A stretch of DNA of 64,000 bases from Mobula birostris (taxonomy: Eukaryota), in contig NC_092374.1 in NCBI RefSeq assembly GCF_030028105.1, forward strand, positions 188,388,638 to 188,452,637, in the 5' to 3' direction. The first letter of the stretch is position 1, and each line of letters opens with the position of its first letter. A program made the translations under genes and the position numbers. This document shows, piece after piece, positions 29,589 through 62,994 of the stretch. The notes beneath the pieces were generated by a model. That model was given only the letters and a program-made list of their open reading frames with translations, was not told the origin of the DNA and made no database searches.

Positions 29589-29657
29589 CTAATTGGAATG
29601 TACAGATCCAGCATCTTCTGTGGTAAAGGTTGTGAAACTCTGCAGTTCTTCAACATT
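29589..29657 (-). CDS. Candidate terminal coding exon of the IgV-5TM gene (phase 0: NVEELQSFTTFTTEDAGSVHSN*; phase 1: EC*)
   Basis: Strong acceptor tttcactttctgtgttttcag; AT-rich putative 3' UTR follows, with AATAAA at 28840-28845 and 28402-28407. Confidence 0.55.
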   Translation of the reverse strand, partial: NVEELQSFTTFTTEDAGSVHSN

Positions 29658-30277
29658 CTGAAAACACAGAAAGTGAAATTGTAAAATGCAGAAACTGATT
29701 AGCTTCACGTTCCAGGGTGTCAGTAATTCTGAGGATCTATCCTTGACCTAACACATTGGTGCAATCACAAAGAAGGCAGGTCAGTGGCTATACTTCATTA
29801 GGAGTCTGTGGAGATTTAGTACATCACCAAAGGCTCTAGCAAATTTCAACAGGTGTACCGGGGAGAATATTCTGCCTGGTTGCATTGCCGTCTGGAGTGG
29901 GGGTGCCAATGGATGTGATCAGAAAAGGCTGTCGTACATCATAAACTCAATCAGTTCCATCATGGGCACTAGCTACCCCATCAGAGGACAACTTCAATAA
30001 GCGATGCTTCAAGAAGTTGGCTGAGGTCCACCACCACCACCCAGGACATGCCCTCTTCTCATTGGGACCATCAGGGAGGAGGTGCAGGAGCATGAAGACA
30101 CACACTTACATCTTAGGAACAACTTCCTTCCCTCTGCCATCAAATTTCTGAACAGGCCACAAACCCGTGACCTCACTTTCTACATTACTTAATTATTTTT
30201 TATATTTCTTATTGTCACTTTTATGATTTTTTTTAATGTCTTGCACTACTGCTGAAAAAGAACGAATTCCTCAAGAC

Positions 30278-30820
30278 ACACTTAGCAGCCTCTTTATAGG
30301 GTACCTCCTGTACCAAATAAAATAGTCACTGAGTATGTTCATGGTACCCCACCCACTTCAAGATTTTAACATGGTCTGCAATCAGAGGTGCTCTTCTACA
30401 CACCACTGTTGTCATATGTGGTTATCTGAGTTGCTGTTGCCTTTCTGTCAGCTTGACATTCTCCCCTGACCTCTCTCATTAACAAGGCATTTATGGCTAC
30501 AGAACTGCCGCTCACTGGATGCTGTTTTTTTTTTTTGCATACCATTCTCTTTAAAATCTAGATAATGTGTGTGAAAATCCCAGGAGATCAGCAGTTTCTG
30601 TGATACTCAATCCACCCCATCTGGCACCGACAGTCATTCCACAAAGTCACATAGATCACATTTCTTCCCCCATTCCGATGTTCAGTCTGAACAGTAAATA
30701 AACTTCTCGACCATGTCTGCATGCTTTTATACGTTGAGTTGCTACCACAGGACTGGCTGATTAGATATTTGATTAACAAGCAGTAGTACAGGCATACATA
30801 ATAAAGTGGCCACTGAGTGC
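30278..30820. mobile_element. Non-autonomous Tc1-type MITE (~540 bp)
   Basis: Degenerate TIRs CACTCAGTGGCCACTTTATT / AATAAAGTGGCCACTGAGTG; another TIR copy at ~38713. Confidence 0.6.
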
Positions 30821-30955
30821 ACGTCATTGATTCTGATTCTAATTCTGAGAGTAAGTGAAGGAGGGAGATATGAAAGCACAGAAGACCAAAGCAACATCTA
30901 TTTACAAACTGAGAGACTGTGAAAGAAGGTCAAGATGGTAGTACATCTCTGTTAC

Positions 30956-30985
30956 CTTCATAGACAACGTGTTCAGACACAGGAG
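30956..30985 (-). CDS. Candidate 30-nt cytoplasmic exon (phase 1: SPVSEHVVYE)
   Basis: ttctcccactgtctacacag| ... GAAG|gtaaca. Confidence 0.5.
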
Positions 30986-31451
30986 CTGTGTAGACAGTGG
31001 GAGAATCCGTGCAGTACTGTGCAAAAGTCTTAGGCACATATGAAGACCTTTGCACAGACTGTACTTATCAATGTGGAGAGCAGGTTTGTAAATCTGGCAG
31101 GAGCAAAGAATATTGGGAATGGTGAGGATGGAGTGCTGCAGGAGGGGTGTGGAACAGGTGGGAGAGAAGGAATGCCAGGGCTGGTGGGAGGGTGGCCCAG
31201 GTGCAGACACACCATTCGCCAAGACACCAGCAAGGTCATTTGATTCCAAACAATTGGTTTATTGATCTCTGGTGCTTCCCGCTCCCTCCCCTCTTCCTTC
31301 CCCTTTTCCCAACCATGATTCCCCTCTCCCTGCCTCCTTCCCACTTTCAGTCGACAATCGAGACCCAAATCAGAATCAGGTTTATCATCACTCACGTCAT
31401 AAAATTTGTTTTTTTTTGTACCAGAGTGCAGTGCAAAACATATTATATATA

Positions 31452-32907
31452 CAGTGCCTGTAAAAAGTATTCACTCCCTTGGAAGTTTTTATGTTTTATT
31501 GTTTTACAACATTGACACACTAAATCATCACTGGTACAGCCAATTGGTTTTAGAAGTTACATAATTAGTTGAATAGAAATCTGTTTTTGGAGACCTGAGT
31601 GCAGTCAAGGCATTTCAATTGATTGCAGTAAAAATGTACCTGTATCTGGAAGGTCCTACTGCTAGTGAGTCAGTGCCCTGGCAAAAACTATACCATGAAG
31701 ACAAAAGAACACTCCAAGCAGCTCCGCAAAAAGGTTATTGAACAGCATAAATCAGGAGATGGATACAGGAAAATTTCCAAGACACTGAATATCCCTTGGA
31801 GTACAGCTGCCAATCATCAAGAAATGGAAAGAATATGGCACAGTTGTAAATCTGCCTGGAGCAGGGCACTCACTGAGTGACCGTACAATAAGGGTCTAGT
31901 GAGGGAAGCCACCAAGAGACCTATGACAACTCTGAAGGAGTTACAAGCTTCAGTGGCTGAGATGGGAGAGACTGCACATACAACGACTGTTGCCCAGGTG
32001 CTTCACCAGTCACACCTTCATGGGAGAGTGGCAAAGAGAAAGCCACCGTTAAAAAACCTCACATGAAATCTCAGCTAATGTTTGCCAGAAGGGATGTGGG
32101 AGACTCTGAAGTCAGCTGGTCTAATGAAACCAAAATTGAATTTTTTGGCCATCACACTAAATGCTACATTTGGCATAAGCCAAACACCTCACATCATCAA
32201 AAGCACACCATCTCTACCATGAAGCATGGTGGTGGCTGCATCATGCTGTGGGGATGCTTCATTGCAGCAGGTCCTGGAAGGACTGTGAAAGTAGAGGGTA
32301 AAATGAATGCAGCAAAATACAGGGAAATCCTAGAGGAAACCGTGATGCAATCTGTAAGAGAACTGAGACTTGGGAGATTTGTTTTCCAGCAAGAAAATCA
32401 CTTCAAGCATAAAGCCAAAGCTTCACGGGAATGGCTTAAAAACAACAAAGTTAATGTCCTGGAATGGCCAAGTCAGAATCCAGACCTCAAGCCAATTGAG
32501 ATTTTGTGGCTGGACTTGAAAAGCATTGTTCACTCACAATCCACATGCAATCTGATAGAGCTTGTGCAGCTCCGTAAAGAATGGAGAAAAACTGCAGTGT
32601 CCAGATGTGCAAAGCTGACAGAGACCTATCCACACAGACTCAAGGCTATAATTGCTGCCAAAGGTGCATCTACTAAATACTGACATGAAGGGGGTGAATA
32701 CTTACACAATCAATTATTTTGTGTTTTATATTTGTAATTAATTTAGATCACTTTATACAGGTCTGTTTTCACTTTAACACAAAAAAGTCTTTTTTTGTTG
32801 ATCAGTGTCAAAAAAGGCAAATTAAATCCACTGTGATTCAATGCTGTAAAACAATAAAACATGAAAATTTCCAAGGGGGGTGGGGTGAATACTTTTTATA
32901 GGCACTA
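31452..32907 (+). mobile_element. Tc1/mariner DNA transposon, degenerate transposase
   Basis: TIR CAGTGCCTGTAAAAAGTATTCAC at both ends, TA flanks; WSNETK, KHGGGCIMLWGCF, WPSQNPDLKPIE motifs. Confidence 0.95.
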
Positions 32908-32924
32908 TATATGTTAATATTCAC

Positions 32925-32952
32925 AGTCCAGATTTGGCCTCTGAGGTAGTTT
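32925..32952 (-). CDS. Candidate 28-nt cytoplasmic exon (KLPQRPNLD)
   Basis: ctcacag| ... CT|gtgaat; phase 0 to 1 links the 38-nt and 30-nt exons; the splice sites are weaker. Confidence 0.4.
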
Positions 32953-33148
32953 CTGTGAGCGTGTCAGATATATGTGATTGGATTTGACTTAATATATTGG
33001 ATTGTGAGTATCAATGTCTGACTTGTATAAACAGAGTGGGAAGATTTCAGTGTGCACAAATTTGTAGCTGTGTGTCAATAATTTATAGCATATTAAATAA
33101 GCTCTACTGCATAAAATACATTCGCTGGAATTAATACGAACAAAATAC

Positions 33149-33186
33149 CTGTGGTCCTTTTTCATTAGTGTTGCTTTTATTTCTGC
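33149..33186 (-). CDS. 38-nt juxtamembrane cytoplasmic exon (CRNKSNTNEKGPQ)
   Basis: tattttcttcattatag| ... CAG|gtattt; in frame with the TM5 exon. Confidence 0.7.
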
Positions 33187-35465
33187 CTATAATGAAGAAA
33201 ATAATCAATAACTATGGATATTCAATATTTCAATGAATTGTCTCACCAACAGTCACTAAAAGAGTTTCAATCCTCTCTCATTTACTCTTGAGAATTTGAC
33301 CCCTTCTTAGTGACTTAACAGAGAGTGCAGACAAGATCTCCAGTTTACAGACTGGGGAAGGTCCCGGATCACACAGTGGGAAAGGGTTAACAATCAATAG
33401 AAGAGTTGCTTTATGCACAGACTCCCACAGTAACTTCCCTGAGGTGTTTCACATGGAGTATTTTGCTCCCCCATTCTTCTGACTGATGGAATTTCCTGCA
33501 CTCAGAGAGCGCAGAATCAGGACACAGGCTCCCGTCCTGCACTGGGAGCCGGGCCAGGAAATGTGCCTTCTTGTTACTTGCCTTTAAAGATCATGGCTTT
33601 CCCCAAGACAGGGTCTGCCATCACATTCCCATTGCCTGCTCCCAGCTGAATGATTGAAAATTGTGGACTGTGTGCTGAATGTCCAAATACTTAAAATGAA
33701 GGGGCAGACAATCAAACAGCAACTCCTTTCCCAGTTTCCCATATCTGCTCCCCATGGGCAAGGTTCCTTTCACCTTCCTATCCTGGGAATGTGAGTGACA
33801 CCAAGTCCCGACACAAGAGAGACCACAGGTGCAAAGTGCCCTTCGGCTCATTTATCTGGCACTTTCTGGAATCCTCCATCCCTGCCCTCCTCCCAGATGT
33901 TCCCCTGATGGACACGGCACTGGGTTTCACCCACCCCTTCCCTCCAGTGATTGATCCAACTCTACGAGATGATAAACCTCTTGAATTCACTCCCCAACAA
34001 TCTCCAAAAGAGAAATGACAAAAGCCCCTGGACTTCACCTTCACTTACCCCAAGAATTTGACCATCCGGAATGGCACAGGCCGGATATTCACTGGGGTAG
34101 GGCGGGGGGAGGGGAATTGCACAGGCCAGATATTCCCTGGAGGAGGTCAAGGTGGTGGGGGGGGGGGGGGGGGAGGAATGGAAAACTCCGCCTGCACTCA
34201 CCAGTCATCCAGCTGTACCCTTTCCGGACCCAAAGGCAAATCGGGCTGTGCAAGTCTGTGGATACAGTTATAAAACGGGATAAATCAAGCCTCGCCCACA
34301 TTATCCCAGGCAACCTTAACACCACAGTCCTTCCCCCATCACTCTGAAACATCAAAACTAAAACGATATTACTGAGGTACCAATTTGAAATTATTTTAAA
34401 AGGTGCAATAAAAATAGGAATGGCTTAGGGCAGTTGCAGGTCAGGAAGCCTCTGTGGAGACAGAAGTAATTCACGTTTGAGGCCCACGCAGCATCCGGTG
34501 ACAGGCACAGCAAGAAGTTCTGGAGCTCCGCATTCCTGCAGATTTCCAGCAGTCTCCCGTAAGAACGGCAGATTTTTTTCTTGAAAGACGGTGAAATCCT
34601 CCAGTTTTATATTCATCTGTATTTACGTTGGATTCTTTTATTTAATTCACCAGATTTTAATTTCCCCATTGCCCTGTGTCAGGATTCAGGCTTATCGGGC
34701 CGAAAAATTAGTTTTACCACTGTCTCACAGAATAGAACCAAGAGCCCTCTGCACTATAGATAGAAAATACTCAGCAAAGTCCATAAAGAGGATCTAGGCA
34801 ATAAAAATATTTTGAGTGTTTTGACAATACTTCTGATTGATACTGTGTCTTTCTTCACTATGGAATTCTGATGAGGTCAGGCAGGACCTTAATGAAAATC
34901 ATACTCTAATCCCAAAAGGCAAAGTGATCCCCTGATGTCAGGGTGAGATGGGATACAACTCTATTGCAACGCCTGATTGGCAAGAAATGACTAGGGAAGT
35001 GTTAGACTAGTGTGTAATATTGTTATTTTACGCAGATTAACTCTTCCTGTGCTTGCTTAATATGTGTGTAATTGTGGTATTTTACTGAGAAAGGCAGGAG
35101 AATGGGGTTGAGAGAGATAGTAAATCAGCCCTGGAGAGGCAGAGCAGACTCGATGGGCTGAATAGCCTAAACTGCTCCTACGTCTTATAGTCTATTTATG
35201 ACAAAAATACCAATGACTCCATGAGGAGCTTCCAGTAGCAGCAGGGAAGATACAGGCCAGAGCTCCTCCTGAACTACAGCAGCCAGTCAGGGACAGGGGA
35301 GGGGCAACAAGCTGGAGGTTTCCCCATAACCCCAACCTGAAGGGGCAGTGGGACCCTGGGGAAAGTTTTCATTATGACTGAGTTCCTCCAGCATTTTGTG
35401 TGTGCTGCTTTGATTTCCAGCAAAAGGTTTGTGATCTGAAGGGTTCTGATCATTTTGATACTTAC

Positions 35466-35558
35466 AGGAAGAGAATATTAAGGCCATGATAAAGCTGACT
35501 GTACATTCGGCCACTGAGGCGATGAGCACATTCCAAGTGTGGAAGGTACTTCCTTGTT
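35466..35558 (-). CDS. TM5 exon (93 nt): KQGSTFHTWNVLIASVAECTVSFIMALIFSS
   Basis: tattttcag| ... T|gtaagt; phase 1/1; hydrophobic helix. Confidence 0.85.
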
Positions 35559-40447: not shown

Positions 40448-40635
40448 TGTGTTACTGTGTTCACTGTGTTATTATAACAGTGCCAGTAACATTATACTAT
40501 GTTACATAAACTGCACCTCACACTTTATATCAACCTGTCAGCCTTCAGGCCAGGCCACGCAGGGACTTATGCTAATAGTCTTTGAGTGACTGCATCTGCT
40601 GGATCATGAACAGTATGGAGAAATAGACAACTCAC

Positions 40636-40719
40636 TTTCCTGATGGATGTCTTTGATGAAGAAAGCAATTGAGGTGCCAACCACGATGACGTGCAGTGCA
40701 AGCTGAATAACTGAAATAA
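40636..40719 (-). CDS. TM4 exon (84 nt): VISVIQLALHVIVVGTSIAFFIKDIHQE
   Basis: ttctctgtctctgacag| ... GAAA|gtgagt; 85-nt intron to TM3; an alternative in-frame acceptor lies 9 nt downstream. Confidence 0.82.
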
Positions 40720-40804
40720 CTGTCAGAGACAGAGAACATGATGATAAGAGAGTTGGATATCACTACGACTGGAAATTTTATAAAACTGATGAGCTGTTTC
40801 TCAC

Positions 40805-40927
40805 CGATACTGGTGCTGAATCTGCAAATTCGCCGGCATTTAGGTACTTGAATGATAAATGGTACAGTCAAAGTAAACAATAGGAGAACTGCAATGCATG
40901 CTGTAGCCACATTTAGTAAACAAGAAT
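40805..40927 (-). CDS. TM3 exon (123 nt): DSCLLNVATACIAVLLLFTLTVPFIIQVPKCRRICRFSTSI
   Basis: tgtttgctctag| ... ATCG|gtgaga; phase 1/1. Confidence 0.85.
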
Positions 40928-42986: not shown

Positions 42987-43088
42987 CTTTAAAATGAACC
43001 GAGCGACTGAACGCAGCGAGGATGAAAAGAAGCTGCAGGATGTTACATATATACAGGACATGCTTCCACTGTTCGTACTTTGGTAATT
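42987..43088 (-). CDS. TM2 exon (102 nt): ELPKYEQWKHVLYICNILQLLFILAAFSRSVHFK
   Basis: tgtccttttctccatag| ... AAAG|gtttgt; phase 1/1. Confidence 0.82.
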
Positions 43089-45598: not shown

Positions 45599-45715
45599 CT
45601 CTGTTTGATTTACACTTCCAGATGTTCAGAAGAAAAACTGCAATAAGATAAACTGAAGAAAACACCAGGGCTGAGATCGACAGAACAATCATCGGAATGT
45701 CATCAGCGGAAGGGT
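45599..45715 (-). CDS. TM1 exon (117 nt): DPSADDIPMIVLSISALVFSSVYLIAVFLLNIWKCKSNR
   Basis: tgtgtttaattgcag| ... AGAG|gtattc; phase 1/1. Confidence 0.87.
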
Positions 45716-45900: not shown

Positions 45901-48900
45901 AGACCATAAGACCATAAGACAAAGAAGTAGGCCATTCGGCCCATCGAGTCTGCTCCGCCATTTTATCATGAGCTGATCCATTTTATCCTATTTAGTCCCA
46001 CTGCCTCGCCTTCTCACCATAAACTTTGATGCCCTGGCTACTCAGATACCTATCAATCTCTGCCTTAAATACACCCAATGACTTGGCCTCCACGGCTGCC
46101 CGTGGCAACAAATTCCATAGATTCACCACCCTCTGACTAAAAAAATTTTTTCGCATTTCTGTTCTGAAAGGGCGCCCTTCAATCCTGAAGTCATGCCCTC
46201 TTGTACTAGACTCCCCCATCATGGGAAACAACTTTGCCACATCCACTCTGTCCATGCCTTTTAACATTCAAAATGTTTCTATGAGGTCTCCCCTCATTCT
46301 TCGAAACTCCAAGGAATACAGTCCAAGAGCGGACAAACGTTCCTCATATGTTAACCCTCTCATTCCCAGAATCATTCTAGTGAATCTTCTCTGTACCCTC
46401 TCCAACATCAGCACATCCTTTCTTAAATAAGGAGACCAAAACTGCCCACAGTACTCCAAGTGAGGTCTCACCAGCGCCTTATAGAGCCTCAACATCACAT
46501 CCCTGCTCCTATGCTCTATTCCTCTAGAAGTGAATGCCAACATTGCATTCGCCTTCTTCACTACCGACTCAACCTGGAGGTTAACTTGAAGGGAATCCTG
46601 TACGAGGACTCCCAAGTCCCGTTGCATCTCAGAACTTTGAATTCTTTCCCCATTTAAATAATAGTCTGCCCGTTTATTTTTTCTGCCAAAGTGTATAACC
46701 ATACACTTTCCAACATTGTACTTCATTTGCCACTTCTCTGCCCATTCTTCCAATCTATCCAAGTCTCTCTGCAGACTCTCCGTTTCCTCAGCACTACCGG
46801 CCCCTCCACCTATCTTCGTATCGTCAGCAAACTTAGCCACAAAGCCATCTATTCCATAATCCAAATCGTTGATGTACAATGTAAAAAGAAGCAGCCCCAA
46901 CACTGATCCCTGTGGAACACCACTGGTAACCGGCAGCCAACCAGAATAGGATCCCTTTATTCCCACTCTCTGTTTCCTGCCAATCAGCCAACGCTCTATC
47001 CACGTATGTAACTTTCCTGTAATTCCATGGGCTCTTATCTTGTTAAGCAGCCTCATGTGTAGCACCTTGTCAAAGGCCTTCTGAAAATCCAAATATACAA
47101 CATCCACTGCATCACCCTTGTCTAGCCTACTGGTAATTTCCTCAAAAAATTGTAATAGGTTTGTCAGGCAGGATTTTCCTTTAAGGAATCCACGCTGAAT
47201 TCTGCCTATCTTGTCATATGCCTCCAGGTACTCCGTAACCTCATCCTTGACAATCGACGCCAACAACTTCCCAACCACTGACGTCAAGCTAACAGGTCTA
47301 TAATTTCCTTTTTGCTTCCTTGCCCCCTTCTTAAATAGTGGGGTGACATTTGCAATCTTCCAGTCTTCCGGAACCACGCCAGAATCTATCAACTTTTGAA
47401 AGATCATCGCTAATGCCTCCACAATCTCCACAGCTACTTCCTTCAGAACACGAGGGTGCATTCCATCTGGTCCAGGAGATTTATCGACCTTTAGCCTATT
47501 CAGCTTCCTGAGTACTTTCTCTGTCGTAATTGTGACTGCGCACACTTCTCTTCCCTGCCACCCTTGAGTGTCCGGTATCCTGCTGTCTTCCTCAGTGAAG
47601 GCTGATGCAAAATACTTGTTCAGTTCCTCTGCCATCTCCTCATCTCCCATTACAATTTCTCCAGTATCATTTTCTATCGGTCCTATATCTACTCTCACCT
47701 GTCTTTTACTCTTTATATACTTGAAAAAGCTTTTAGTATCCTCTTTGATATTATTTGCTAGTTTCCTTTCATAGTTAATCTTTTCTCTCTTAATGACCTT
47801 CTTGGTTTCCTTTTGTAAGGTTTTAAAGACTTCCCAATCCTCTGTCTTCCCACTAATTTTTGCTTCCTTGTATGCCCTTTCCTTAGCTTTAACTTCTCTT
47901 GTCAACCACGGTTGCATCCTTTTTCCACTCGAAAATTTCTTCTTTTTTGGAATATACCTGTCTTGCACATTCCTCATTTCTTGCATAAACTCCAGCCACT
48001 GCTGCTCTGCTGTCTTTCCCGCCAGTGTCTCTTTACAGTCAACTTTGGCCAGTTCCTCTCTCACGCCACTATAATTTCCTTTACTCCACTGAAACACCGA
48101 CACATCAGATTTCGGCTTCTCTTTTTCTAATTTCACAGTGAACTCAATCATGTTATGATCACTGCCTCCTAAGGGTTCCTTCACCTCAATCTCTCCAATC
48201 ACCTCCGGTTCATTACACAATACCCAATCCAGTACAGCCGATCCCCTAGTGGGCTCAACAACAAGCTGTTCTAAAAAGCCATCTCGCAGACATTCTACAA
48301 ATTCTCTCTCTTGAGATCCAGTGCCGACCTGATTTTTCCAATCTACTCGCATGTTAAAATCCCCCACAATTATCATAACACTGCCCTTCTGACAAGCCTT
48401 TTCTATTCCCTGCTGTAATTTGTAGTCCACATCCCTGCAGCTGTTTGGAGGCCTATAAATAACTGCCATCAGGGTCCTTTTACCCCTGCTATTCCTTAGC
48501 TCAACCCATAAAGATTCTGCACCTTCTGATCCTATATCACCTCTTTCTAATGATTTAATATCATTTCTTACCAATAAAGCCACTCCTCCCCCTCTGCCTA
48601 CCTTCCTATCCTTCCGATACACCGTGTATCCTTGGACGTTCAGCTCCCAGAGACATGCATCCTTTAGCCAGGTTTCAGTGATGGCCACAATATCATACCT
48701 GCCAATCTGTAGCTGTACAACAAGATCATCCACCTTATTCCTTATGCTGCGTGCATTTAAGTACAGCACCTTAAGACCAGTATTTGATACTTTTTGCTTT
48801 GATTTCACTGCAACTTTATTGCACTGCAACTCATCCCAATGGCTACACAGTTGACCCATCACCTGCCTGTCTTTCCTGACATCTTTACTGCTCACTATCT

Positions 48901-49982: not shown

Positions 49983-51578
49983 TAGTGGCATGCAAAAGTT
50001 TGGGCACCTCTGGTCAAACTTTCTGTTACTGTGAATAGCTAAGCGAGTAAAAGATGAACTGATTTCCAAAAAGGCATAAAGTTAAAGATGACACATTTCT
50101 TTAATATTTTAATCAAGACAACATTTTTATTTCCATCTTTTACAGCTTCAAAATAACAAAAAAGGAAAAAGGCCCAAAGCAAAAGTTTGGGCACCCTGCA
50201 TGGTCAGTACTTAGTAACACCACTTTTGGCAAGTATGACAGCTTGTAAACACTTTCTGTAGCCAGCTAAGAGTCTTTCAATTCTTGTTTGGGGGAGTTTC
50301 ACCCATTTTTCCTTGCAAAAGGCTTCTAGTTCTGTGAGGTTCTTGGGCCGTCTTGCATGCACTGCTCTTTTGAGGTCTATCCACAGATTCTCGATGATGT
50401 TTAGGTCAGGGGACTGTGAGGGCCATGGCAAAACCTTCAGCTTGTGCCTCCTGAGGAAGTCCATTGTGGATTATGAGGTGTGTCTAGGATCATTATGCTG
50501 TTGTAGAAGCCATCCTCTTTTCATCTTCAGCTTTTTCACAGACGGTGTGATGTTTGCTTCCAGAATTTGCTGGTATTTAATTGAATTCATTCTTTCCTCT
50601 GCCAGTAAATATTACAGGTACCACTGGCTGCAACACAAGCCCAAAGCATGATCGATCCACCCCCTGTGCTTAACAGTTGGAGAGGTGTTCTTTTCATGAA
50701 ATTCTGCACCCTTTTTTCTCCAAACATACCTCTGCTCATTGCAGCCAAAAAGTTCTATTTTAACTTCATCAGTCCACAGGACTTGTTTCCAAAATGCATC
50801 AGGCTTGTTTATATCTTCCTTTGAACCTTTAAAATAGAACATTAGAAAAAATAGAGAAAAAAGGGTGCAGAACTTCATGAAAAGAACACCTCTCCAACTG
50901 TTAAGCACAGGGGTGGATGGATCATGCTTTGGGCTTGTGTTGCAGGCAGTGGCATGGGGAACGTTTCACTGGTAGAGGAAAGAATGAATTCAATTAAATA
51001 CCAGCACATTCTGGAAGCAAACATCATACCGTCTGTAAAAAAGCTGAAGATGAAAAGAGGATGGCTTCTACAACAGCAAAATGATCCTAAACACACCTCA
51101 AAATCCACAATGGACTACCTCAAGAGGCGCAAGCTGAGGTTTGGCCATGGCTCTCACAGTCCCCTGACCTAAACATCATCGAAAATCTGTGGATAGACCT
51201 CAAAAGAGCAGTGCATGCAAGACGGCCCAAGAATCTCACAGAACTAGAAACCTTTTGCAAGGAAAAATGGGTGAAACTCCCCCAAACAAGAATTGAAAGA
51301 CTCTTAGCTGGCTACAAAAAGCATTTATAAGTTGTGATACTTGCCAAAACGGGTGTTACTAAGTACTGACCAGGGTGTCCAAACTTTTGCTTCAGGCCCT
51401 TTTTGTTTTTTGTTATTTTGAAACTGTAAAAGATGGAAATAAAAATGTTTTCGTGCTGAAAATATTAAAGAAATGTGTCATCTTTATGCTTTTTGGAAAT
51501 CAGGTCATCTTTTACTCGCTTAGCTATTCACAGTAACAGAAATTTTGACCGAGGTGCCCAAACTTTTGCATGCCACTG
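49983..51578. mobile_element. Fold-back Tc1 derivative made of two inverted 3' halves
   Basis: TIR CAGTGGCATGCAAAAGTTTGGGCACC at both ends with TA flanks; transposase C-terminus (WPSQSPDLNIIENLW...GVTKY) on minus at 50204-50826 and on plus at ~50857-51369. Confidence 0.9.
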
Positions 51579-51579
51579 T

Positions 51580-54450
51580 AGCTGTAAATACCATTCCCCC
51601 CCCCCCCCCCACCAGCAAGGTACTGCGTGAGGTCTACAGCACCATCAGTGACTTTCAAACCAAACACCCCAATGGTATCTTCATGATTACAGGTGATTTT
51701 AACCATGCAAACCTAAAGGCAGTCCTGCCTAAATTCCACCAACATGTTGAATCTGCTACCAGTTTACATTAACATACCAGCTGCCCATAAAGTAGTCTCT
51801 CAACCCCACAATGGACTCTCAGATCACCAATCTGTAATGTTAATTCCAGCATAACAAACCAGTGATCAAACAGGTCAAACCAGTTCCAAGGGTGGTGAAA
51901 ATCTTGCCTGAGGGGGCAATCTCTACACTGCAGGACTGCCTTGATAATACAAACTGGAGAACGTTCAGCGAGGTTGTTACCTATGGCAACCACGTTAACC
52001 TCAAGGAATACAGTGTTGATAGAAAGTTTGTGAACCCTGTGAAATTTTCTCTATTTCTGCATAAATACGACTTAAAATGTGATCAGATCTTTATGCAAGT
52101 CCTCAAGCTAGATAAAGAGAACCCAATTAAATACATCACACAAAAATACTTCTGTCAAGGCAAAAAGATCCAATATTACATGTATTTTTTGGAAAAAGTA
52201 TGTGAACCTCTGGGCTAATGCCTTCTCCAAATATGGAGTCAGGTGTTCCAATCAATGAGATGAGATTGGAGGTGTGGATTGCAGAGGTGCCTGCCCTATA
52301 AAAAAGACACACAAAGTCAGGCTACTGAAAGCCTGCTCTTCTCAAGAAAGATCTGTTTATGCGTAGCATGCCTCAATGAAAACAACATTCAGAGGACCTT
52401 AGAAGAAGAACTGTAGAGGTGCATGAAGCTGGAAAAGGCTACAAAAGCATTTCTAAAGACCTGAGTGTTCATCAGTCCACAGTAAAATATATTGTCTACA
52501 AATGGAGGAAACTCAGTGCTGTTGCTACTTTTCCTAGGAGTGGGCATCCTGCAAAGATCACACCAAGAGCGCAATGTGCAATGCTGAAGAGGGTGAAAAA
52601 GAACTCGAGGGTAACAGCAAAAGACCCTCAGAAATCTCTAGAACTTAAAGTCTCTGTTCATGTGGTCCCTTTAAGAAAAACACTGAACAGGATGGTGTTC
52701 ATGGAAGGACACCACAGAGGAAACCACTCATCTCCAGAAAGAACATTGCTGCATGTCTCAAGTTTGCAAAAGACCACCTGGATGTTCTATAACAATTCTG
52801 GGACAATGTTCTCTGGACAGATGAGACAAAAGTTGAACCTTTTGGCAGAAATGCACATTGCCATGTTTGGAAGAAAAAGGGCACTGCACACCAACACCAA
52901 AACCTCATCTGAACTGTGGAGCACGGTGGAAGGAGCATCATGGTTTGGGACTACTTTGCTGCCTCAGGGCCTGGACGGTTTGCAATCGTTGAGACAACAA
53001 CAAATTCAAAATGGTACCAAGATATTTTACAGGAGAATGTCAGGGTAGCAGTACGTCACCTGAAGCTCAGTAGAAGTTGGATAATGCAACAAGACAATAA
53101 TCCGAAAGACAAGAGTGAGTCAACAACAGAATGGTTTAAAAAGAAGAAAATTTGTGTTATGGAATGGCCGTCAAAGTCCTGACCTTAATCCTATGCAAAA
53201 TGTTGTGCAAGGACCTGAAGCAAGCAGTTCATGCAAGGAAGCCCACCAACATCCCAGAGTTGAAGCAGTTTTGTACGGAGGAATGATGTCCAACAAGCTG
53301 ATGTGCAGGACTGATCAACAGTTACTGGGAATGTTTGGTTGAAGTTGTTGCTGTACAAGGGGGTCACATCAGTTGCTGAAAGCAAAGGTTCACATACTTC
53401 TTCCAACAAATACATGTCATGATGAAGCATTTTTCTCAATAAATAAATGAATAAACCAGTACAATGTTTTGGCATTATTTATTTAATTGGGTTCTCTTTA
53501 TCTAGCTTTAGGACAACATGAAAAACTGATTACATTTTCGGTCATATTTATGAAGAAACAGAGAAAATTCTACAGGGTTTCCAAACTTTCTAGCAACACT
53601 GTGTACCGATTCTGTGACCAGCCACAGAGAAGTGTACTGAGGATGTTACCATCATGAAACACATCCGGGTGAGGGAAAAATCAGAAGCCATGGCTTACTG
53701 CAGAGGTCCGTGCCTAGCGCCAGTATCCTACCAAAATGACAATCGTCGGCTAGCATTAACATCAATGATTATGAAATGCTTTGAGCGGCTGGTCATGCAG
53801 CCTTTCTCCTGGCTACATTGGATCCGTTCCAGTTCACTTATCGCTCAAATGAATCCACTGACAATGCAATAGCCACAGCTTTCCACTGTCCTGTCCCAAC
53901 TGGAAAACGGGGTCTCATATGCCAGACTGCTGTTTATAGAGTTCAGTTCGGAGTTGAGTTCAACACCATCATAACCTACCCCAGAAACTGGTGGGGAAAC
54001 TGTCCTCGCTTGGTCTCAGCACCTCCTTCTGCAATTGGATACTGGGCATCTTAACAGTAAGGCCACAGTCAGTCCATGTGGACAACAACGTCTCTTGTTC
54101 CATTTCGCCGAGCACTGGCGCTCCCTAAGTCTGAGTGCTCAGCCCACGGCTGTTCACGCCGCTGACACATGACTGTGTCTGTCGCATGATTCCGCTCAAA
54201 CCGTGTCACCGAGTTTGCGGATGACACAACAGTGATCGGCCTTACCAAGAACGTGATGAGATGGAATACAAAGAGGACATGGAGGGGCTGGCGGATAGTG
54301 TGAGAAGAACACCCTAAGCCTGAACACGGAGAAGACAAAGGAAATCATTGTGGACCTCAGGGAGGTGCAGATGAACCATCCCCCTCTGCGAAAACCTGGC
54401 TCCTGTATAGAGAGAGTTAAGTTCACCAAGTTCCTGGGAGTTCACACCAC
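51580..54450 (+). mobile_element. Degenerate Rex1/Babar LINE split by a Tc1 element
   Basis: ITGDFNHANLKAVLP (endonuclease) before the Tc1; IMKCFERLV, DPFQFTYRSNESTDNAI after it. Confidence 0.8.
52011..53601 (+). mobile_element. Tc1/mariner transposon (degenerate)
   Basis: TIR CAGTGTTG...AGAAAGTTTG at both ends, left TA; HEAGKGYKSISK, GRPAKIT-like and EHGGRSIMVW motifs. Confidence 0.93.
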
Positions 54451-54454
54451 AAAT

Positions 54455-56010
54455 GGTCGATGAACCGAGTGAGTATTTTGTAGCAGTCTACACTGTGGAA
54501 GACAATAGTAGTATGCCGGAAGTTCAAGAGTGTCAAGGGGCAAAAGTGAGTGTAGTTGCTATTACAAGGGAGATGGTGTTTGGGAAACAGAAAAGTCTAA
54601 AGCCACCTGGACCTGCCAGACAATACCCCAGGGTTCAAAAAGAGGTAGCTGGTGATTATGGAGGCACTATTAATGACCTTTCAAGAAACAATAGATTCTG
54701 GCATGGATTTGGAGGACTAGAAATTACAAATGTCGCTCTACTCTTCAAGAAGGGAGGAAGACAGAAGAAAGGAAATTATAGGCCAGTTCGCCTGACCTGA
54801 GTGGCTGGGAAAGTGTTGGATTCGATTGTCGGGGATGTAATTTCGGGGAACTTGGAGGCACTTGACAAAATAGGCTAAAGTCACCATAGCTTCCTTAAGT
54901 GAAAAACTGGCATGACAAATCTGTTGGAATTCTTTGAATAATAAGTAGGATAGACGAAGAGAATTGGTGGATGTTGTGTACTTGGATTTTCAGAAGGCCT
55001 TTGACAAGATGTCACACGTAAAGCTGCTAAACAAGATAAGCGCCCAGGGTATCACAGGAAAGGTTCTAGCATTGGCTGAGTGGCAGGAGGCTACGTGTGG
55101 GAATAAAGGGAGCCTTTTTTTGGATTGGCTGCTGGTGACTAGTGGTATTCCACAGGGGTCTGTGTTGGGACCGATTCTTCTACATTGTATGTCAACAATT
55201 CGGATGATGGAATTGATCATTTTTGCAACCAAGTTTGCTGATGATATGAAGATAGATGGAGGGGTAGGTAGTGTTGAGGAAGCAGAGAGGCTGCAGGAGG
55301 ATTTAGACAGATTAGAAGAATGGGCAAAGAGTGGCAGATTGAATACTGTGTCGGGATGTGTATGGGCACACACTTTGGTAGAAGGAATAAAAGTGTAGAC
55401 TACTTTCTAAATGGGAAGAAGATTCAAAAATCTGAGGTGCAATGTGATTTGGGAATCCTCATGCAGGATTCCCAAAAGGTTAATATGCAGGTTGAATCAG
55501 TTGTGAGGAAGGCAAATGAAATGTTAGCATTCATTTCAAGAGGACTACAATATAAACACAAAGATGTAATGCTGAGGCCTGTATAAGGCAAGGGTGAGGC
55601 CTCACAGAGTGGTGTGAGCCGTTTTGAGCACCTTTTCCAAGAAAGAACGTGTTGATACCGGACTGGGATTGGAGTAGGTTCACGAGAATGATTCCAGGAG
55701 GGAAAGAGTAGCGATTGAAGGCTCAGGGCCTGTACTCGCTGGAATTGAGAAGGACTGGGGGTGGTGGGGGAATCTCATTGAATACTGAAAGGCCTAGATA
55801 GTGCAGATGTGAAGAGGCTGCTTACTTTGGTGGGGGAACCTATGACCAGAAGACACAGCCTCAAGATAGAAGGACATCCATTTAGAACAGAGAGAGGGGG
55901 AAGCTCTTTCCCCAGAGGGAGGTGAATCTGTCGAATTTCTTGCCACTGGCAGCTGTGCAGGCCAGGTCACTGGATGCATTTAAGGCGTAGGTTGATAGGT
56001 TCTTGATTAG
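54455..56010 (+). mobile_element. Degenerate CR1 fragment; duplicated at 56870-57890
   Basis: VDVVYLDFQKAFDKM, KFADD; the two copies are near-identical. Confidence 0.88.
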
Positions 56011-56376
56011 TTGGAGCACGTAGGTTATGGGAGAAGCAGAAGAATGGAGTCGAGAGGGAAATGGGTCAGTCATGGTGAAATGGGAGAGCAGACTCAATGG
56101 GCTGAATGGCCTATTTCTGTTCCTATGTCTTATGGAGATCCAGAGTAACACTCACATACACTGGTGCTGGAGGAACTCAGCAGGTCAGGCTGCATTCATG
56201 GAGAGGAATGAACAGGCCACGTTTCAACTTGAGACCCTTCATCAGTATCATTCCTCTCCATAGATGCTGTCTGATGTGCAGAATTCCTGCAGCAATTTGT
56301 GTCTGTTCATGAGAACTTGTCCAAGCTGAACAGCATCCAATCCTAATATAAATGCTCAGTGACACAAGCTACTCAC

Positions 56377-56682
56377 CAAAGATTCGCAAATCTATTTTTC
56401 TCAGCTTTCGACTATTAACGCTGATAGTATAATTTCCCTGGTCACTTGTCTTTAAATTGCTTAATAATAAATCTCCAGTGGACAGATTAAAATTCAAACG
56501 ATCTTTAAAATATTTGTTTGGTTTCACTTCTGGGTGGTTTGGTCCAACATCCAAAATGGTGAACTCGGTTTCATTGTTGCTAGTGAACTTCCACACAACT
56601 TCATGACCATGGAGATTGGCACTGTTTCCAGACTCCAACGAAACATTTGAACCAAGGGCACCCTCAACTTGCTTCATCTCTG
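56377..56682 (-). CDS. Ig V-set exon B (306 nt, cysteine-free, CD2/SLAM/CEACAM N-domain type)
   Basis: (T)n-ccttccttaatgcccag| ... TTTG|gtgagt; phase 1/1; G-x-N-V-x-L, VVWKF, DRL, GDLLLSNL and DQGNY V-set motifs. Confidence 0.93.
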
Positions 56683-57896
56683 CTGGGCATTAAGGAAGGA
56701 AAAAAAAAATCAGTTATGTTGCATCCTTGAAAAAGGTGAAATGTGGGCAGAGTTCAAGGCAAGGTGATATACATAACTAAACAGAAGGCAACTAAAAAAA
56801 ACAGTTTTGCTGGGAGGGGGGGAAAACGATGAAATATGTAGCTAAGCTAGCCTAAAATACCAGTATATTTTCAGATATATAAAAGGAGGCAATAGTAGGA
56901 TTGGACCATTGGAAAACGATGCTGGAGAGATAGTAATGCGGGACAAGAGAAAGGTGGACGAACCGAGTGAGTATTTTCTATCAGTCTTCACTGGGGAAGA
57001 CACCAGTATGCCAGAAGTTCAAGAGTATCAAGGGGCAGAAGTGAGTGCAGTTGCTATTACAAGGGAGATGGTGTTTGGGAAACAGAAATGTCTAAAGTCA
57101 CCTGGTCCTGCCAGAAAATACCCCAGGGTTCAAAAAGAGGTAGCTGAAGAGATTATGGAGGCATTAGTAATGAACTTTCAAGAAATCGATTCTGGCATGG
57201 ATTTGGAGGAAGGAAAATTGAAAAGTCACTCCACTCTTCAAACAGGGAGGGAGGCAGAAGAAAGGAAATTATAGGCCAGTTACCCTAACCTGAGTGGCTG
57301 GGAAAGTGTTGGATTCGATTGTTGGGGATGTAGTTTCAGGGAATTTGAAGGCACACGACAAAATAGGCTAAAGTCAGCATAGCCTTCTTAAGGGAAAATC
57401 TGGCATGACAAATATGTTGGAATTCTTTGAATAATAATTAGGATAGATGAAGAGAATTGGTGGATGTTGTGTACTTGAATTTTCAGAAGGCCTTTGACAA
57501 GATGTCACACGTAAAGCTGCTAAACAAGTTAAGAGCCCAGGGTATCACAGGAAAGGTTCTAGCATTTGCTGAGTGGTAGGAGGCTACGTGTGGGAATAAA
57601 GGGAGCCTTTTTTTGGATTGGATGCTGGTGACTAGTGGTATTCCACAGGGGTCTGTGTTGGGACCGATTCTTCTACATTGTATGTCAACGATTTGGATGA
57701 TGAAATTGATCATTTTATGACCAAGTTTGTGGATGATATGAAGATGGATGGAGGGGTAGGTAGTGTTGAGGAAGCAGAGAGGCTGCAGGAGGCCTTAGAT
57801 TAGAAGAATGGGCAAAGAGGTGGCAGATTGAATACTGTGTCGGGAAGTGTTTGGGCACACACTTTGGAAGAAGGTATAAAAGTGCAGGCTAATACT

Positions 57897-59677: not shown

Positions 59678-59689
59678 GTTCTTGATTAG

Positions 59690-62325
59690 ACCCATGGAAA
59701 ACCTACAGCACAATACAGGCCCTTCGGCCCACAGAGTTGTGCTGAACATGCCCTTACCTTAGAAATTACTAGCCCTCTATTTTACTAAGCTCCATGTACC
59801 TATCTAAAAGTCTCTTAAAAGACCCTATCATATCCACCTCCACCACCATTGCTGGCAGCCCATTCCATGCACTCACCACTCTCTGAGTAAAAAACTTACC
59901 CCTGACATCTCCTCTGTACTTACTCCCCAGTACCTTAAACCTATGTCCTCTTGTGGCAACCATTTCAGCCATGGGAAAAAGCCTCTGACTATGCACACGA
60001 TCAATGCCTCTCATCATCTTATACACCTCTATCAGGTCATCTCTCATCCTCCATCACTCCAAGGAGAAAAAGTTGAGTTCACTCAACCTATTCTCATAAG
60101 GAATTCTCCCCAATCCAGGGAACGTCCTTGTAAATCTCTTCTGCATCCTTTCTATGGTTTCCACATCCTTCCTGTAGTGAGGCGACCGAAACTGAGCACA
60201 ATACTCCAAGTGGGGTCTGACCAGGGTCCTATATAGCTGCAACATTACCTCTCAGCTCCTAAATTCAATTCCACGATTGATGAAGGCCAATACACCGTAC
60301 GCCTTCTTAACCACAGAGTCAACCTGCACAGCTGCTTTGAGGGTCCTATGGACTCGGACCCCAAGATCCCTCTGATCCTCCAAACCGCCAAGAGTCTTAC
60401 CATTCTATATTCTGCCATCATATTTGACCTACCAAAATGAACCACTTCACATTTATCTGGGTTGAACTCCATCTGCCACTTCTCAGCCAGTTTTGCATCC
60501 TATCAATGTCCCGCTGTAACCTCTGACAGCCCTCCACACTATCTACAACATGTCCAACCTTTGTGTCATCAGCAAACTTACTATCCCATCCCTCCACTTC
60601 CTCATCCAGGTCACTTACAAAGAGTAAGGGTCCCAGAACAGATCCCTGAGGCACTCCACTGGTGATCAACCTCCATGCAGAATATGACCCGTCTACAACC
60701 ACTCTTTGCCTTCTGTTCTGGATCCACAAAGCAATGTCCCCTTGGATCCCATGCCTCCTTACTTTCTCAATAAGCCTGGTTTGGGCTACCTTAACAGATG
60801 CCTTGCTGAAATCCATATACACTACATCTACTGCTCTTCCTCCATCAATGTGTTCAGTCACATCCTCAAAAAATTCAATCAGGCTCGCAAGGCATGACCT
60901 GCCCTTGACAAAACCATGCTGACTACTCCTAATCATATTATACCTCTCCAAATGTTCATAAATCCTGCCTCTCTGGATCTTCTCCATCAACTTACCAACC
61001 ACTGAGGTAAGACTCACTGGTCTATAATTTCCTTGGCTATCTCTACTCCTTTTCTTGAATAAAGGAACAACATCCGCAACCCTCCAATCCTCCGTAACCT
61101 TTCCCGTCCCCATTGATGATGCAAAGATCATCGCCAGAGGCTCAGCAATCTCCTCCCTCGCACCCCACAGTAGCCTGGGGTACATCTCATCCGGTCCCGG
61201 CGACTTATCCAACTTGATACTTTCTAAAAGCTCCATCACATCCTCTTTCTTAATATTTACATGCTTGAGCTTTTCAGTCTGCTACAAGTCATCACTATAA
61301 TCACCAAGATCCTTTTCCATAGTGAATACTGAAGTATTCATTAAGTACCTCTGCTTTTTCCTCCGGTTCCATACACATTCCCACTGTCACACTTGATAGG
61401 TCCTATTCTTTCGCGTCTTATCCTCTTGCTCTTCACATACTTGTAGAATGCCTTGGGATTTTCTTTAATCCTGCCCGCCAAGGCCTTCTCATGGCCCCTT
61501 CTGGCTCTCCTAATTTCTTTCTTAAGCTCATTCCTATTAGCCTTATAATCTTCTAGATCTCTATCATTACCTAGCTCTCTGAACCTTTTGTAAGCTTTTC
61601 TTTTCTTCTTGACTAGATTTATTACAGCCTTTGTACACAACGGTTCCTGTACCCTACCATAACTTCCCTGTCTCATTGGAACGTACCTATGCAGAACTCC
61701 ACACAAATATCCCCTGAATATTGGCCACATTTCTTCTGTACTTTTCCCTGAGAACATCTGTTTCCAATTTAAGCCTCCAATTTCCTGCCTGATAGCCTCA
61801 TAATTCCCCTTACTCCAATTAAACACTTTTCTAACTTGTCTGTTCCTATCTCCCTCCAATGCCACTGTAAAGGGGATAGAAGTATGATCACTATCTCCAA
61901 AATGCTCTCCCACTGAGAGACCTGACACCTGACCAGGTTCATTTCCCAATACCAAATCAAGTACAGCCTCTCCTCTTGTAGGCTTATCTACATATTGCGT
62001 CAAGAAACCTTCCTGAACACACCTAACAAACTCCACCCCATCTAAACCCTTTGCTCTAGGGAGATGCCAATCGATATTTGGGAAATGAAAATCTCCCATC
62101 ACAACAACTCTGTTATTATTACACCTTTCCAGGATCTGTTTCCCTACCTGCTCCTCGATATCCCTGTTAATATTGGGTGGTCTATAAAAAACACCCAGTA
62201 AAGCTATTGACCCTTTCTTGTTCCTAACCTCCACCCACAGAGACTCCGTAGACAATCCCTCCATGGCGTCCACCTTTTCTGCAGCCATAACACTGTCTAA
62301 TCAACAGTGCCACACCCCCACCTCT
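59690..62325 (-). mobile_element. CR1 LINE (endonuclease + RT + 3' end, frameshifted)
   Basis: GVFYRPP, GDFHFP, SDHT; KSPGPDEMYP, KFADD; LEYCAQF. Confidence 0.93.
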
Positions 62326-62688
62326 TTCCCATGTAGGTTATGGGAGAAGCAGGAGAGTGGAGTCGAGAGGAAAATGGGTCAGTCATGGTGAAATGGGAGA
62401 GCAGAGTCAATGGCTGAATGGCCTATTTCTGCTCCTATATCTTATGGAAATCCAGAGTAACACTCACATACACTGGTGCTGGAGGAACTCAGCAGGTCAG
62501 GCTGCATTCATGGAGAGGAATGAACAGTCGACGTTTCAAGCTGAGACCCTTCATCAGTATCATTCCTCTCCATAGATGCTGTCTGATGTGCAGAATTCCT
62601 GCAACAATTTGTGTCTGTTCATGAGAACTTGTCCAAGCTGAACAGCATCCAACCGTACTATAAATGCTCAGTGACACAAGCTACTCAC

Positions 62689-62994
62689 CAAAGATTCGCA
62701 ATTCTCTTTTTCTCGGCTCCTGACCATCAATGCTGATAGTATAATTTCCCTGGTCACTTGTCTTTAAATTGCTTAATAATAAATCTCCAGTGGACAGATT
62801 AAAATTTAAACGATCTTCAAAATATTTGTTTGGTTTCACTTCTGGGTGGTTTGGTCCAACATCCAAAATGGTGAACTCGGTTCCATTGTTGCTAGTGAAC
62901 TCCCACACAACTTCACGACCATGGAGATCAGCACTGTTTCCAGACTCCAACAAAACATTCGAACCAAGGGCACCCTCAACTTGCATCGTTTCAG
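62689..62994 (-). CDS. Ig V-set exon A (306 nt, cysteine-free), paralog of exon B
   Basis: Same acceptor and donor context as exon B; about 22 nt differences by hand count; frame open. Confidence 0.93.

Follow-up and report, generated by a model that had tools for sequence, protein, structure and literature searches.

Gene structure and splice forms

The window, by which we mean the whole 64,000-nucleotide stretch of DNA analysed here, corresponds to Mobula birostris GCA_030028105.1, CM057560.1 (0 mismatches over 44,412 bp). Its minus strand carries a gene that spans about 44 kb; of the 11 coding exons, 10 lie inside the window (Table 1). The predicted gene is real and encodes a Mobula birostris surface protein, with two cysteine-free V domains carried on a five-helix anchor. 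A first-pass annotation had proposed eight GT-AG exons joining in phase 1 without stops, and this proposal held: 8 of 8 have an AG acceptor and a GT donor where predicted, seven are divisible by 3 with phase 1 entry, and joined together they yield a single open frame of 389 codons. Across V1, V2, TM1 to TM5 and the tail exon, the product matches RefSeq isoform X2 (XP_072115212.1) residue for residue, save one Ala. This sole difference lies at the V2 acceptor, which RefSeq sets at the CAG 3 nt downstream (exon 56377-56679, one Ala fewer); the Hypanus orthologue retains the missing Ala.

The gene is not hidden, as it had been called, since RefSeq already predicts four isoforms (X1-X4), but it is unnamed there ('uncharacterized protein'). 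While its eight exons stood, the earlier model was incomplete at both ends, lacking the leader, the 54-nt cassette and the terminal coding exon. The leader, sought beyond position 64000, was located there. The terminal exon was absent from the earlier exon list even though it supplies that annotation's start coordinate. All ten in-window coding exons are open, with intact borders.

Table 1. Coding exons of the manta Ig-5TM gene, in order of transcription, with the evidence for each.
Feature	Position in window	Strand	Evidence and remarks
Leader exon	73844-73966 (window-equivalent)	-	Outside window
Ig V domain 1 exon (cysteine-free, CD2/SLAM-like V-set)	62689-62994	-	Phase 1-1; AG/GT; Pfam V-set 28.6 bits; identical in RefSeq X1-X4
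Ig V domain 2 exon (recent tandem copy of V1 exon)	56377-56682	-	Tandem CAG-CAG acceptor; RefSeq start 56679
Stalk (DPSADD) + TM helix 1 + first cytoplasmic loop (KCKSNR) exon	45599-45715	-	Borders, hydrophobic peak, RefSeq match, AlphaFold2 model
TM helix 2 + start of outer loop 1 exon	42987-43088	-	Borders, hydrophobic peak, RefSeq match, AlphaFold2 model
TM helix 3 + second cytoplasmic loop (KCRRICR) exon	40805-40927	-	Borders, hydrophobic peak, RefSeq match, RNA words
TM helix 4 (with His) + start of outer loop 2 exon	40636-40719	-	Borders, hydrophobic peak, RefSeq match, RNA words
Remainder of outer loop 2 (QGS; relatives GC[ED]P) + TM helix 5 (with Glu) exon	35466-35558	-	Borders, hydrophobic peak, RefSeq match, family alignment
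Cassette exon, 54 nt, +18 cytoplasmic-tail residues	34202-34255	-	Phase 1-1; tblastn and border check
Tail exon, 38 nt, RNKSNTNEKGPQ	33149-33186	-	AG/GT borders, RefSeq match
Last coding exon, 22 codons + TAG stop (29589-29591)	29589-29657	-	tblastn and border check

Both V domains exceed the Pfam V-set cut-off of 26 bits (V1 28.6, V2 30.5) and contain zero cysteines, in keeping with their earlier description as cysteine-free IgV domains of the CD2/SLAM kind. A PDB search returned JAML, SLAMF6, CD48 and CD2 as the nearest solved relatives, all of them weak, and faint Pfam matches to Receptor_2B4 and SLAM were obtained with the manta gene or its relatives. Seven N-glycosylation sequons fall in the V domains. 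The V2 exon lies in a duplicated block of 753 bp (56017-56769 versus 62330-63081) that is 94.3% identical between copies; divergence of V2 from V1 is 7.2% in the exon and 4.5% in the flanks, and the dN/dS of 0.83 between the copies is also compatible with relaxed constraint. Compared with Swiss-Prot models, a full-length model matched the Ig proteins JAML, CLMP and Ly-9 via the two V domains, and because the alignments run through these domains, the matches are uninformative on the anchor. As for an ordinary SLAM/CEACAM gene with additional C2 exons, tblastn with 14 family members as queries found no C2-type Ig exon between V2 and TM1.

The RefSeq-predicted isoforms indicate that, through phase-1 cassette splicing, the protein can have one or two V domains, five or three helices and a tail of varying length. 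Isoform X4 omits the V2 exon, X3 omits the TM3 and TM4 exons jointly, and the cassette exon, which the orthologues of M. hypostoma and Hemitrygon share, is included in X1, X3 and X4. The manta gene is transcribed, as judged from the exon-intron-exon stretch 40636-40927 (TM3-intron-TM4). In each of four RNA runs from one study, the sampled-word share of this stretch was 0.54, compared with 0.56 expected if both the TM3 and TM4 exons are retained and the 85-nt intron has been removed; this measure is a share of words and not a count of junction reads.

The membrane anchor and its relatives in sharks and rays

Five hydrophobic peaks coincide with the five TM exons, and two AlphaFold2 models each place five long helices there, at middling confidence (mean pLDDT 67 and 74). 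Lys and Arg number about 12 in the inner loops and tail versus about 4 in the outer loops, and are concentrated after TM1, after TM3 and in the tail. These data agree with the positive-inside, five-pass arrangement anticipated by the first-pass annotation, and in the predicted five-pass topology the N terminus is outside, the C terminus inside, and each helix is encoded by a phase-1 exon of its own. V2 is joined to TM1 by the linker RIFDPSADD. No ITIM, ITSM or other recognised motif was found in the cytoplasmic tail; its constitutive exons are without Tyr, and the Tyr residues of the cassette exon match neither ITIM nor ITSM.

Pfam and PDB sequence searches with the anchor returned noise only. 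The best fold matches of the TM-only model (pLDDT 74) were generic, namely cytochrome b561 and STEAP at TM of about 0.5 and E of at least 0.3, in a comparison of low power for helical bundles. Since cytochrome b561/STEAP-like proteins came first in Foldseek (TM about 0.5, E no better than 0.4), a haem carrier was considered as a candidate; it was rejected because the E-values are non-significant and the helix His residues of the ray clade are not conserved in sharks.

Profiles of the TM module (hmmsearch, jackhmmer) gathered about 45 proteins and then about 30 more; the module is shared by at least 70 predicted proteins, drawn from no fewer than 14 species of sharks and rays. Members come from Mobula, Hypanus, Hemitrygon, Pristis, Heptranchias, Scyliorhinus and Pristiophorus, and further from Heterodontus, Rhincodon, Mustelus, Hemiscyllium, Chiloscyllium and Cetorhinus. 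None was found outside elasmobranchs in word-indexed searches, which have a short reach. Database names for these proteins are misleading (HEPACAM-, CD48-, SLAM- or CEACAM-like), and NCBI labels on paralogues include 'CD48 antigen-like' and 'SLAM family member 9-like'. Some entries hold two or three TM modules and resemble fused tandem genes. Our literature search turned up no description of an Ig-5TM or CD47-like family in sharks or rays. The other option raised at first pass, an undescribed Ig-5TM family, proved right: the elasmobranch family is large, unnamed and seemingly undescribed in the literature.

The usual family build is a cysteine-free V domain of the CD2/SLAM type, a C2 domain and the 5TM module, with one to three V repeats among elasmobranch relatives. 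Identity to the manta V domain has a median of 43.5% in the 30 V matches with a 5TM module and 29.3% in the 86 without one, and in these predicted proteins the V type and the module co-occur across sharks and rays. The RefSeq relatives in Hypanus sabinus (LOC132394532), Pristis pectinata (LOC127585946) and Mobula hypostoma (LOC134346677) have the TM module, V type, tail motif and splice variants in common with the manta gene. Among orthologues the TM module is 59-92% identical, with profile E-values down to 1e-120. Their builds are V-V-5TM in Hypanus, V-V-V-5TM in Hemitrygon and V-V-C2-5TM in Pristis; the M. hypostoma orthologue shares both the build and the substitutions of the manta gene. 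This distribution is best explained by an ancestral V + C2 + 5TM build from which the stingray/manta lineage lost the C2 exon and in which it duplicated the V exon.

Sharks and Pristis retain the C2 domain, the TM4-TM5 loop Cys and the Gly preceding TM3, whereas the manta gene is without all three. The loop reads GC[ED]P in most relatives and QGS in the manta gene. The position before TM3 is Asp in both Mobula species, while in the 25 remaining members of the alignment it is almost always Gly. In most relatives the loop Cys is accompanied by a spare Cys on the F strand of C2, and the two cysteines were lost jointly in members P0087 and P0130 and in the V-V clade; Pristis is an exception, with the loop Cys kept and the spare Cys located elsewhere. 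This co-occurrence suggests that relatives probably have a disulfide between the membrane-proximal Ig domain and the TM4-TM5 loop. Judged by the alignment, the manta gene is a derived member, with the loop Cys replaced by Ser and the Gly before TM3 by Asp, at the best-conserved loop positions of the family.

Comparison with CD47 and CD2/SLAM proteins

CD47, the 'don't-eat-me' marker, has been described as alone among immune-system receptors in having 5 TM helices, and as having a supposedly unique fold unlike that of any other protein (PMC8410850). Its C15-C245 bond, C245-I246-P247 and G191 are retained even in poxvirus CD47-like proteins; its V domain has the canonical B-F disulfide, and an SWF linker leads to helix I (PMC8410850). 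The human CD47 gene comprises 13 exons; those encoding the ectodomain and the multi-pass domain are constant, and the tail isoforms arise when exons 8-13 are skipped (PMC10902115).

CD47 and the manta gene product share an Ig V domain placed directly on five helices in an N-out, C-in orientation, and in both a short cytoplasmic tail is altered by small skipped exons. The exon plan is also alike, running from leader to V to helices (one exon each in the manta gene) to small skipped tail exons, the CD47 side being taken from the literature (PMC10902115). Three further CD47-like features are present in most relatives and absent from the manta gene: the loop Cys-x-Pro, the spare Ig Cys, and the Gly at the top of helix 3, whose equivalence to G191 was set by its position in the topology and not by alignment with CD47. 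In contrast, the manta V domains are of the CD2/SLAM type and, having no Cys, are without the canonical and inter-domain disulfides of CD47. There are two V domains in the manta gene (V + C2 in relatives) versus one in CD47, and the SWF linker is missing. CD47 is a single gene, while the Ig-5TM family has many paralogues per genome.

The V-set without a B-F disulfide in the manta gene, the V + C2 ectodomain of its relatives and the tandem expansion of the gene family are all CD2/SLAM-like. Anchors in the CD2/SLAM family are single-pass or GPI, and the tails of SLAM members bear ITSM. The manta gene differs in its five-pass anchor, in a tail without ITSM or other tyrosine motif, and in having no C2.

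The first-pass annotation had suggested a divergent CD47-like receptor, a claim that, in the sense of kinship, was not sustained by Pfam, the PDB profile, Foldseek or VIA-align. PF04549 gave no match in isoform X4 or five relatives, and at E up to 10 neither PF04549 nor PF08204 matched any of the TM modules of 27 members; the sole match to PF08204 was faint and fell on the C2 domain of a paralogue. A 17-member TM profile run with hmmsearch against all PDB sequences returned hydrophobic noise only (SLC30A4, the ACE2 anchor) and no CD47. With the TM-only model, CD47, whose 5-TM fold (7MYZ) has a central helix III, was absent among the matches listed by Foldseek (against PDB, Swiss-Prot models and BFVD), VIA-align wide and an Atlas shape search, methods of low power for helical bundles. 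In a comparison of language-model features, the CD47 cluster (PF04549) was the top named match for the TM parts of three members, at scores of 0.65-0.69 where the trust level is 0.9; these TM parts are 16-25% identical to that of the manta gene. This lead to CD47 is weak. The likeness to CD47 is architectural; the kinship claim failed the sequence comparisons made, and the low-powered fold searches gave no CD47 among the matches listed.

A serious possibility is that the build is convergent, with an elasmobranch-specific multi-pass module unrelated to CD47 having been joined to a CD2/SLAM-type ectodomain by phase-1 exon shuffling. This would fit the uniformly negative comparisons with CD47, a V domain of CD2/SLAM and not CD47 type, and the confinement of all members found in short-reach searches to elasmobranchs. 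However, the motif parallels, the exon plan and the repeated language-model lead exceed what would be expected from topology alone, and the negative fold searches used middling models and are low-powered for helical bundles.

It is possible, if doubtful, that the 5TM module and the multi-pass domain of CD47 share ancestry, the gene being a divergent paralogue with a CD2/SLAM-type ectodomain. Each places Ig ahead of 5TM in the N-out, C-in orientation, and the manta arrangement of one constitutive exon per helix and then small skipped tail exons recalls the skipping that generates CD47 tail isoforms (PMC10902115). In most members, moreover, the loop Cys-x-Pro, spare Ig Cys and helix-3 Gly parallel C15-C245, C245-I246-P247 and G191 (PMC8410850), and PF04549 leads for three members. 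Against common ancestry, CD47 is missing from the PF04549/PF08204, PDB profile and fold searches; the language-model scores are far under 0.9, and CD47 is perhaps nearest as the only named Ig-plus-multipass family; and the manta gene itself has neither the loop Cys nor the Gly, and likewise no canonical V disulfide or SWF linker. We regard as unlikely the larger reading that the family module is the first relative of the CD47 fold, with CD47 the lone bony-vertebrate survivor of an ancient jawed-vertebrate Ig-5TM family that in sharks and rays grew to dozens of genes with CD2/SLAM-type ectodomains.

An incipient pseudogene, or an Ig gene reading through into a separate multi-pass gene, could account for the lost Gly and loop Cys, the V-copy dN/dS and the database proteins with repeated TM modules, but is highly improbable given the open exons with intact borders, the same build and substitutions in M. 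hypostoma, the V-V-5TM build kept in Hypanus and Hemitrygon, the co-occurrence of V type and module in sharks and rays, and the exonic words in four RNA runs.

Proposed role and significance

We consider it probable that the manta gene is a real, transcribed gene for a type-I-oriented glycoprotein of the elasmobranch Ig-5TM family that acts in recognition or adhesion. The predicted protein comprises a signal peptide, two cysteine-free V domains of the CD2/SLAM type, five helices and a short tail, and may serve as a cell-surface ligand in recognition or adhesion, its outer V domain engaging a partner on a second cell. Binding would most likely be to one of the expanded CD2/SLAM-like receptors of the manta genome, or else homophilic. 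The five-helix bundle could function as an anchor and a platform for lateral association, comparable to the multi-pass domain of CD47. In this lineage the putative disulfide tether between the membrane-proximal Ig domain and the TM4-TM5 loop would have been lost, together with the near-invariant Gly before TM3, and cassette splicing may tune V count, helix count and tail length.

Sharks and rays have dozens of predicted genes with Ig domains on a five-helix anchor, under misleading names in databases. Should the family and CD47 be kin, the oldest jawed vertebrates would allow tests of how the 'marker of self' originated, and if CD47 is a lone survivor, the CD47 and CD2/SLAM lineages would be linked. 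If the two are unrelated, the Ig-plus-five-pass design evolved twice, and a multi-pass anchor therefore likely does something that a single helix cannot. The manta gene, with C2 replaced by V repeats and the likely tether lost, would therefore offer a natural experiment on the purpose of that tether.

Gene model and splice forms

The eight exons of the first-pass annotation were confirmed on the minus strand, each flanked by an AG acceptor and a GT donor, and their splicing yielded a single open frame of 389 codons. Seven of the eight have lengths divisible by three and begin in phase 1; the 38-nt tail exon closes on a codon boundary. The gene is real, though not hidden as originally described, since RefSeq already predicts it as a Mobula birostris 'uncharacterized protein' with isoforms X1–X4 (XP_072115211 to XP_072115214). 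An exhaustive HMMER search with the second Ig V exon (V2) as query found a 367-aa protein whose five-helix anchor (5TM module) is identical to the model save for an 18-residue insert, and a follow-up search retrieved three further isoforms of it. The gene occupies 44.4 kb on CM057560.1 (GCA_030028105.1), a locus overlapping the window over 44,412 bp with 0 mismatches.

Isoform X2 matches the product of the eight exons over its full length, except for one Ala at the join between the first Ig V exon (V1) and V2. The V2 acceptor is a tandem CAG-CAG (56680-56685), of which RefSeq takes the second, so that V2 starts at 56679 and the Ala is lost. This Ala is retained in the Hypanus orthologue protein, and both acceptors may therefore be used. 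The annotated start places 20 residues before a second Met; because the orthologues start, and the signal peptide begins, at that second Met, translation probably initiates at Met21.

RefSeq predictions further include the cassette exon in isoforms X1, X3, and X4, omit V2 from X4, and omit TM3 and TM4 (207 nt, exons within 40636-40927) from X3, leaving three helices with the N terminus still outside and the C terminus inside. In M. hypostoma, the orthologue's isoform X2 likewise skips TM3 and TM4 together. Helix number is thus either varied by splicing or an artefact of prediction. Some helices are missing in other paralogue isoforms too.

Transcription was evaluated by looking up 31-letter words from the 292-bp stretch comprising the TM3 exon, the 85-nt intron, and the TM4 exon in RNA runs. 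Spliced mRNA with both exons but not the intron should contain 147 of the 262 words (0.56); a share of 0.54 was found in each of four RNA runs from one study of one organism, an indirect observation that is consistent with spliced mRNA. The share was smaller in a second organism.

The window is repeat-rich vertebrate DNA, with LINE ORFs and Tc1/mariner remnants in the introns. The minisatellite produces long spurious minus-strand ORFs in three frames. The plus-strand LINE ORF2 has a second copy that is 95% identical over 2.8 kb, which suggests recent activity of this family.

Coding exons and repeat elements discussed in the text (window positions)
Feature	Position	Strand	Remarks
Leader exon	73844-73966 (window-equivalent)	-	10001-10123 of L001, the genomic locus carrying the gene; ~10.85 kb upstream of V1, outside the window
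V1	62689-62994	-	
V2	56377-56682	-	first-pass boundaries
TM4	40636-40719	-	
TM5	35466-35558	-	
Cassette exon	34202-34255	-	54 nt, phase 1-1; missed in first-pass list
Tail exon	33149-33186	-	
Last coding exon	29589-29657	-	TAG at end; missed in first-pass list
Minisatellite	746-1710		34-bp unit, 28.6 copies, 92% matching
LINE ORF2	10700-13705	+	1001 aa, intact-looking (endonuclease, reverse transcriptase, zf-RVT)
LINE ORF2, second copy	24732-27537	+	
LINE ORF	46268-48895	-	875 aa (endonuclease, reverse transcriptase); V2-TM1 intron, gene's own strand
Relatives of the 46268-48895 LINE	54633-57891		more diverged; around V2
Tc1/mariner-type transposase remnants	32063-32683 and 52419-53048	+	in introns; DDE_3 domain; Sleeping-Beauty-like HTH just below Pfam cut-off
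Inverted repeat	49984-50720 / 50854-51577		~738 bp, 91.7% identical, arms ~130 bp apart; V2-TM1 intron

Domain structure and topology

The protein-level predictions were borne out: both Ig exons exceed the Pfam V-set threshold, the V domains are cysteine-free, and each of the five short exons encodes one hydrophobic stretch. Two AlphaFold2 models (mean pLDDT 67 for the whole protein, 74 for the anchor only) showed a pair of Ig sandwiches and an anchor of five long helices. In agreement with the positive-inside rule, the basic residues Lys and Arg cluster behind TM1 (KCKSNR...K) and TM3 (KCRRICR) as well as in the tail, which supports a topology with the N terminus outside and the C terminus inside. 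All seven N-glycosylation sequons N-terminal to the membrane lie within the V domains, whose closest solved structures, JAML, SLAMF6, CD48, and CD2, are all weak matches.

V1 and V2 represent a tandem copy of 753 bp with 94.3% identity. Divergence is higher in the exon (7.2%) than in its flanks (4.5%), dN/dS between the copies is 0.83, and the substitutions are concentrated in two places, the N terminus and the F-G region.

Elasmobranch family and comparison with CD47

The anchor profile matched ~45 proteins in a first search and ~30 more in later ones, all from sharks and rays (at least 14 species in 13 genera). Their database names, either 'uncharacterized' or HEPACAM-, CXADR-, CEACAM-, CD48-, SLAM9-, hemicentin-, or VEGFR2-like, are misleading where they take the '-like' form. 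The commonest build is a leader, a cysteine-free V, a C2, and the 5TM module. Median identity to the focal V was 43.5% in 30 V matches with the module versus 29.3% in 86 without it, with almost no overlap between the two ranges; V type and anchor have therefore remained coupled since before the divergence of sharks and rays. Within the orthologous group the arrangement is V-V-C2-5TM in Pristis, V-V-5TM in Hypanus, V-V-V-5TM in Hemitrygon, and V-V(-V)-5TM in Mobula. No remnant of a C2 exon was found within the window, and M. birostris has paralogue proteins with C2 and 5TM. The most fitting placement of the focal gene is within an unnamed Ig-5TM family of elasmobranchs whose ectodomains are of CD2/SLAM type, where it is a derived member. 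Four proteins of 700-940 aa from Hypanus, Hemitrygon, and M. birostris (P0010, P0031, P0009, and P0157) carry two or three 5TM modules each; they resemble tandem family genes fused by read-through but might be genuine genes with several modules.

Across the family, conservation of the anchor peaks at a Gly directly preceding TM3 and at the GC[ED]P motif of the TM4-TM5 loop. The loop Cys co-occurs with an additional, third Cys on the F strand of C2 (DCGxYxC), and both are missing from one Cetorhinus member, one Pristis member, and the entire clade of stingray and manta orthologues with repeated V and no C2; the exception is one Pristis protein with the loop Cys and a spare Cys elsewhere in C2. 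This co-occurrence in related sequences suggests that, in relatives of the focal gene, a disulfide probably ties the loop to the Ig domain nearest the membrane. In both Mobula species, Asp replaces the pre-TM3 Gly and the loop Cys is missing (Ser in M. birostris).

The CD47 structure paper (PMC8410850) describes CD47 as the immune system's sole 5-TM receptor, with a fold that matches nothing else. The hallmarks of CD47 given there are the C15-C245 bond, which ties the V domain to the loop between TM4 and TM5 (C245-I246-P247), Gly191, which tops helix III, and an SWF linker; poxvirus copies keep the Cys pair and the Gly. The elasmobranch family parallels CD47 in the order of its domains, in topology and exon plan, in the splicing of its tail, and in three features at the motif level. 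The focal gene itself, in contrast, fails several of the CD47 hallmarks.

Of the suggested CD47-like character, the build stands, but the direct tests of kinship were all negative or uninformative. Neither PF04549 nor PF08204 of Pfam matched, a PDB profile search did not find CD47 chains, and CD47 was not among the Foldseek, VIA-align, and Atlas shape matches listed for the anchor model (pLDDT 74). The only positive sign, a hint, came from language-model features: in three members, the anchor part had a CD47 cluster as its top named match, with scores of 0.65-0.69 that lie well below the tool's trust line of 0.9. These anchor parts are 16-25% identical to that of the focal gene, and CD47 may rank first as the sole named family combining Ig with multiple membrane passes. 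Deep kinship of the anchor with CD47 is conceivable, but we consider it rather doubtful.

Proposed role

Predicted helix 4 contains an ionisable His and helix 5 a Glu, which could pair with each other in the bundle or draw in another membrane protein as partner. The helix-4 position is often Glu in sharks. The tail carries no ITIM- or ITSM-like tyrosine motif. Because of its architecture and lack of a signalling tail, the focal protein is most likely a cell-surface recognition ligand, whose V domains would engage a partner in trans while the helix bundle would provide the anchor and lateral association.
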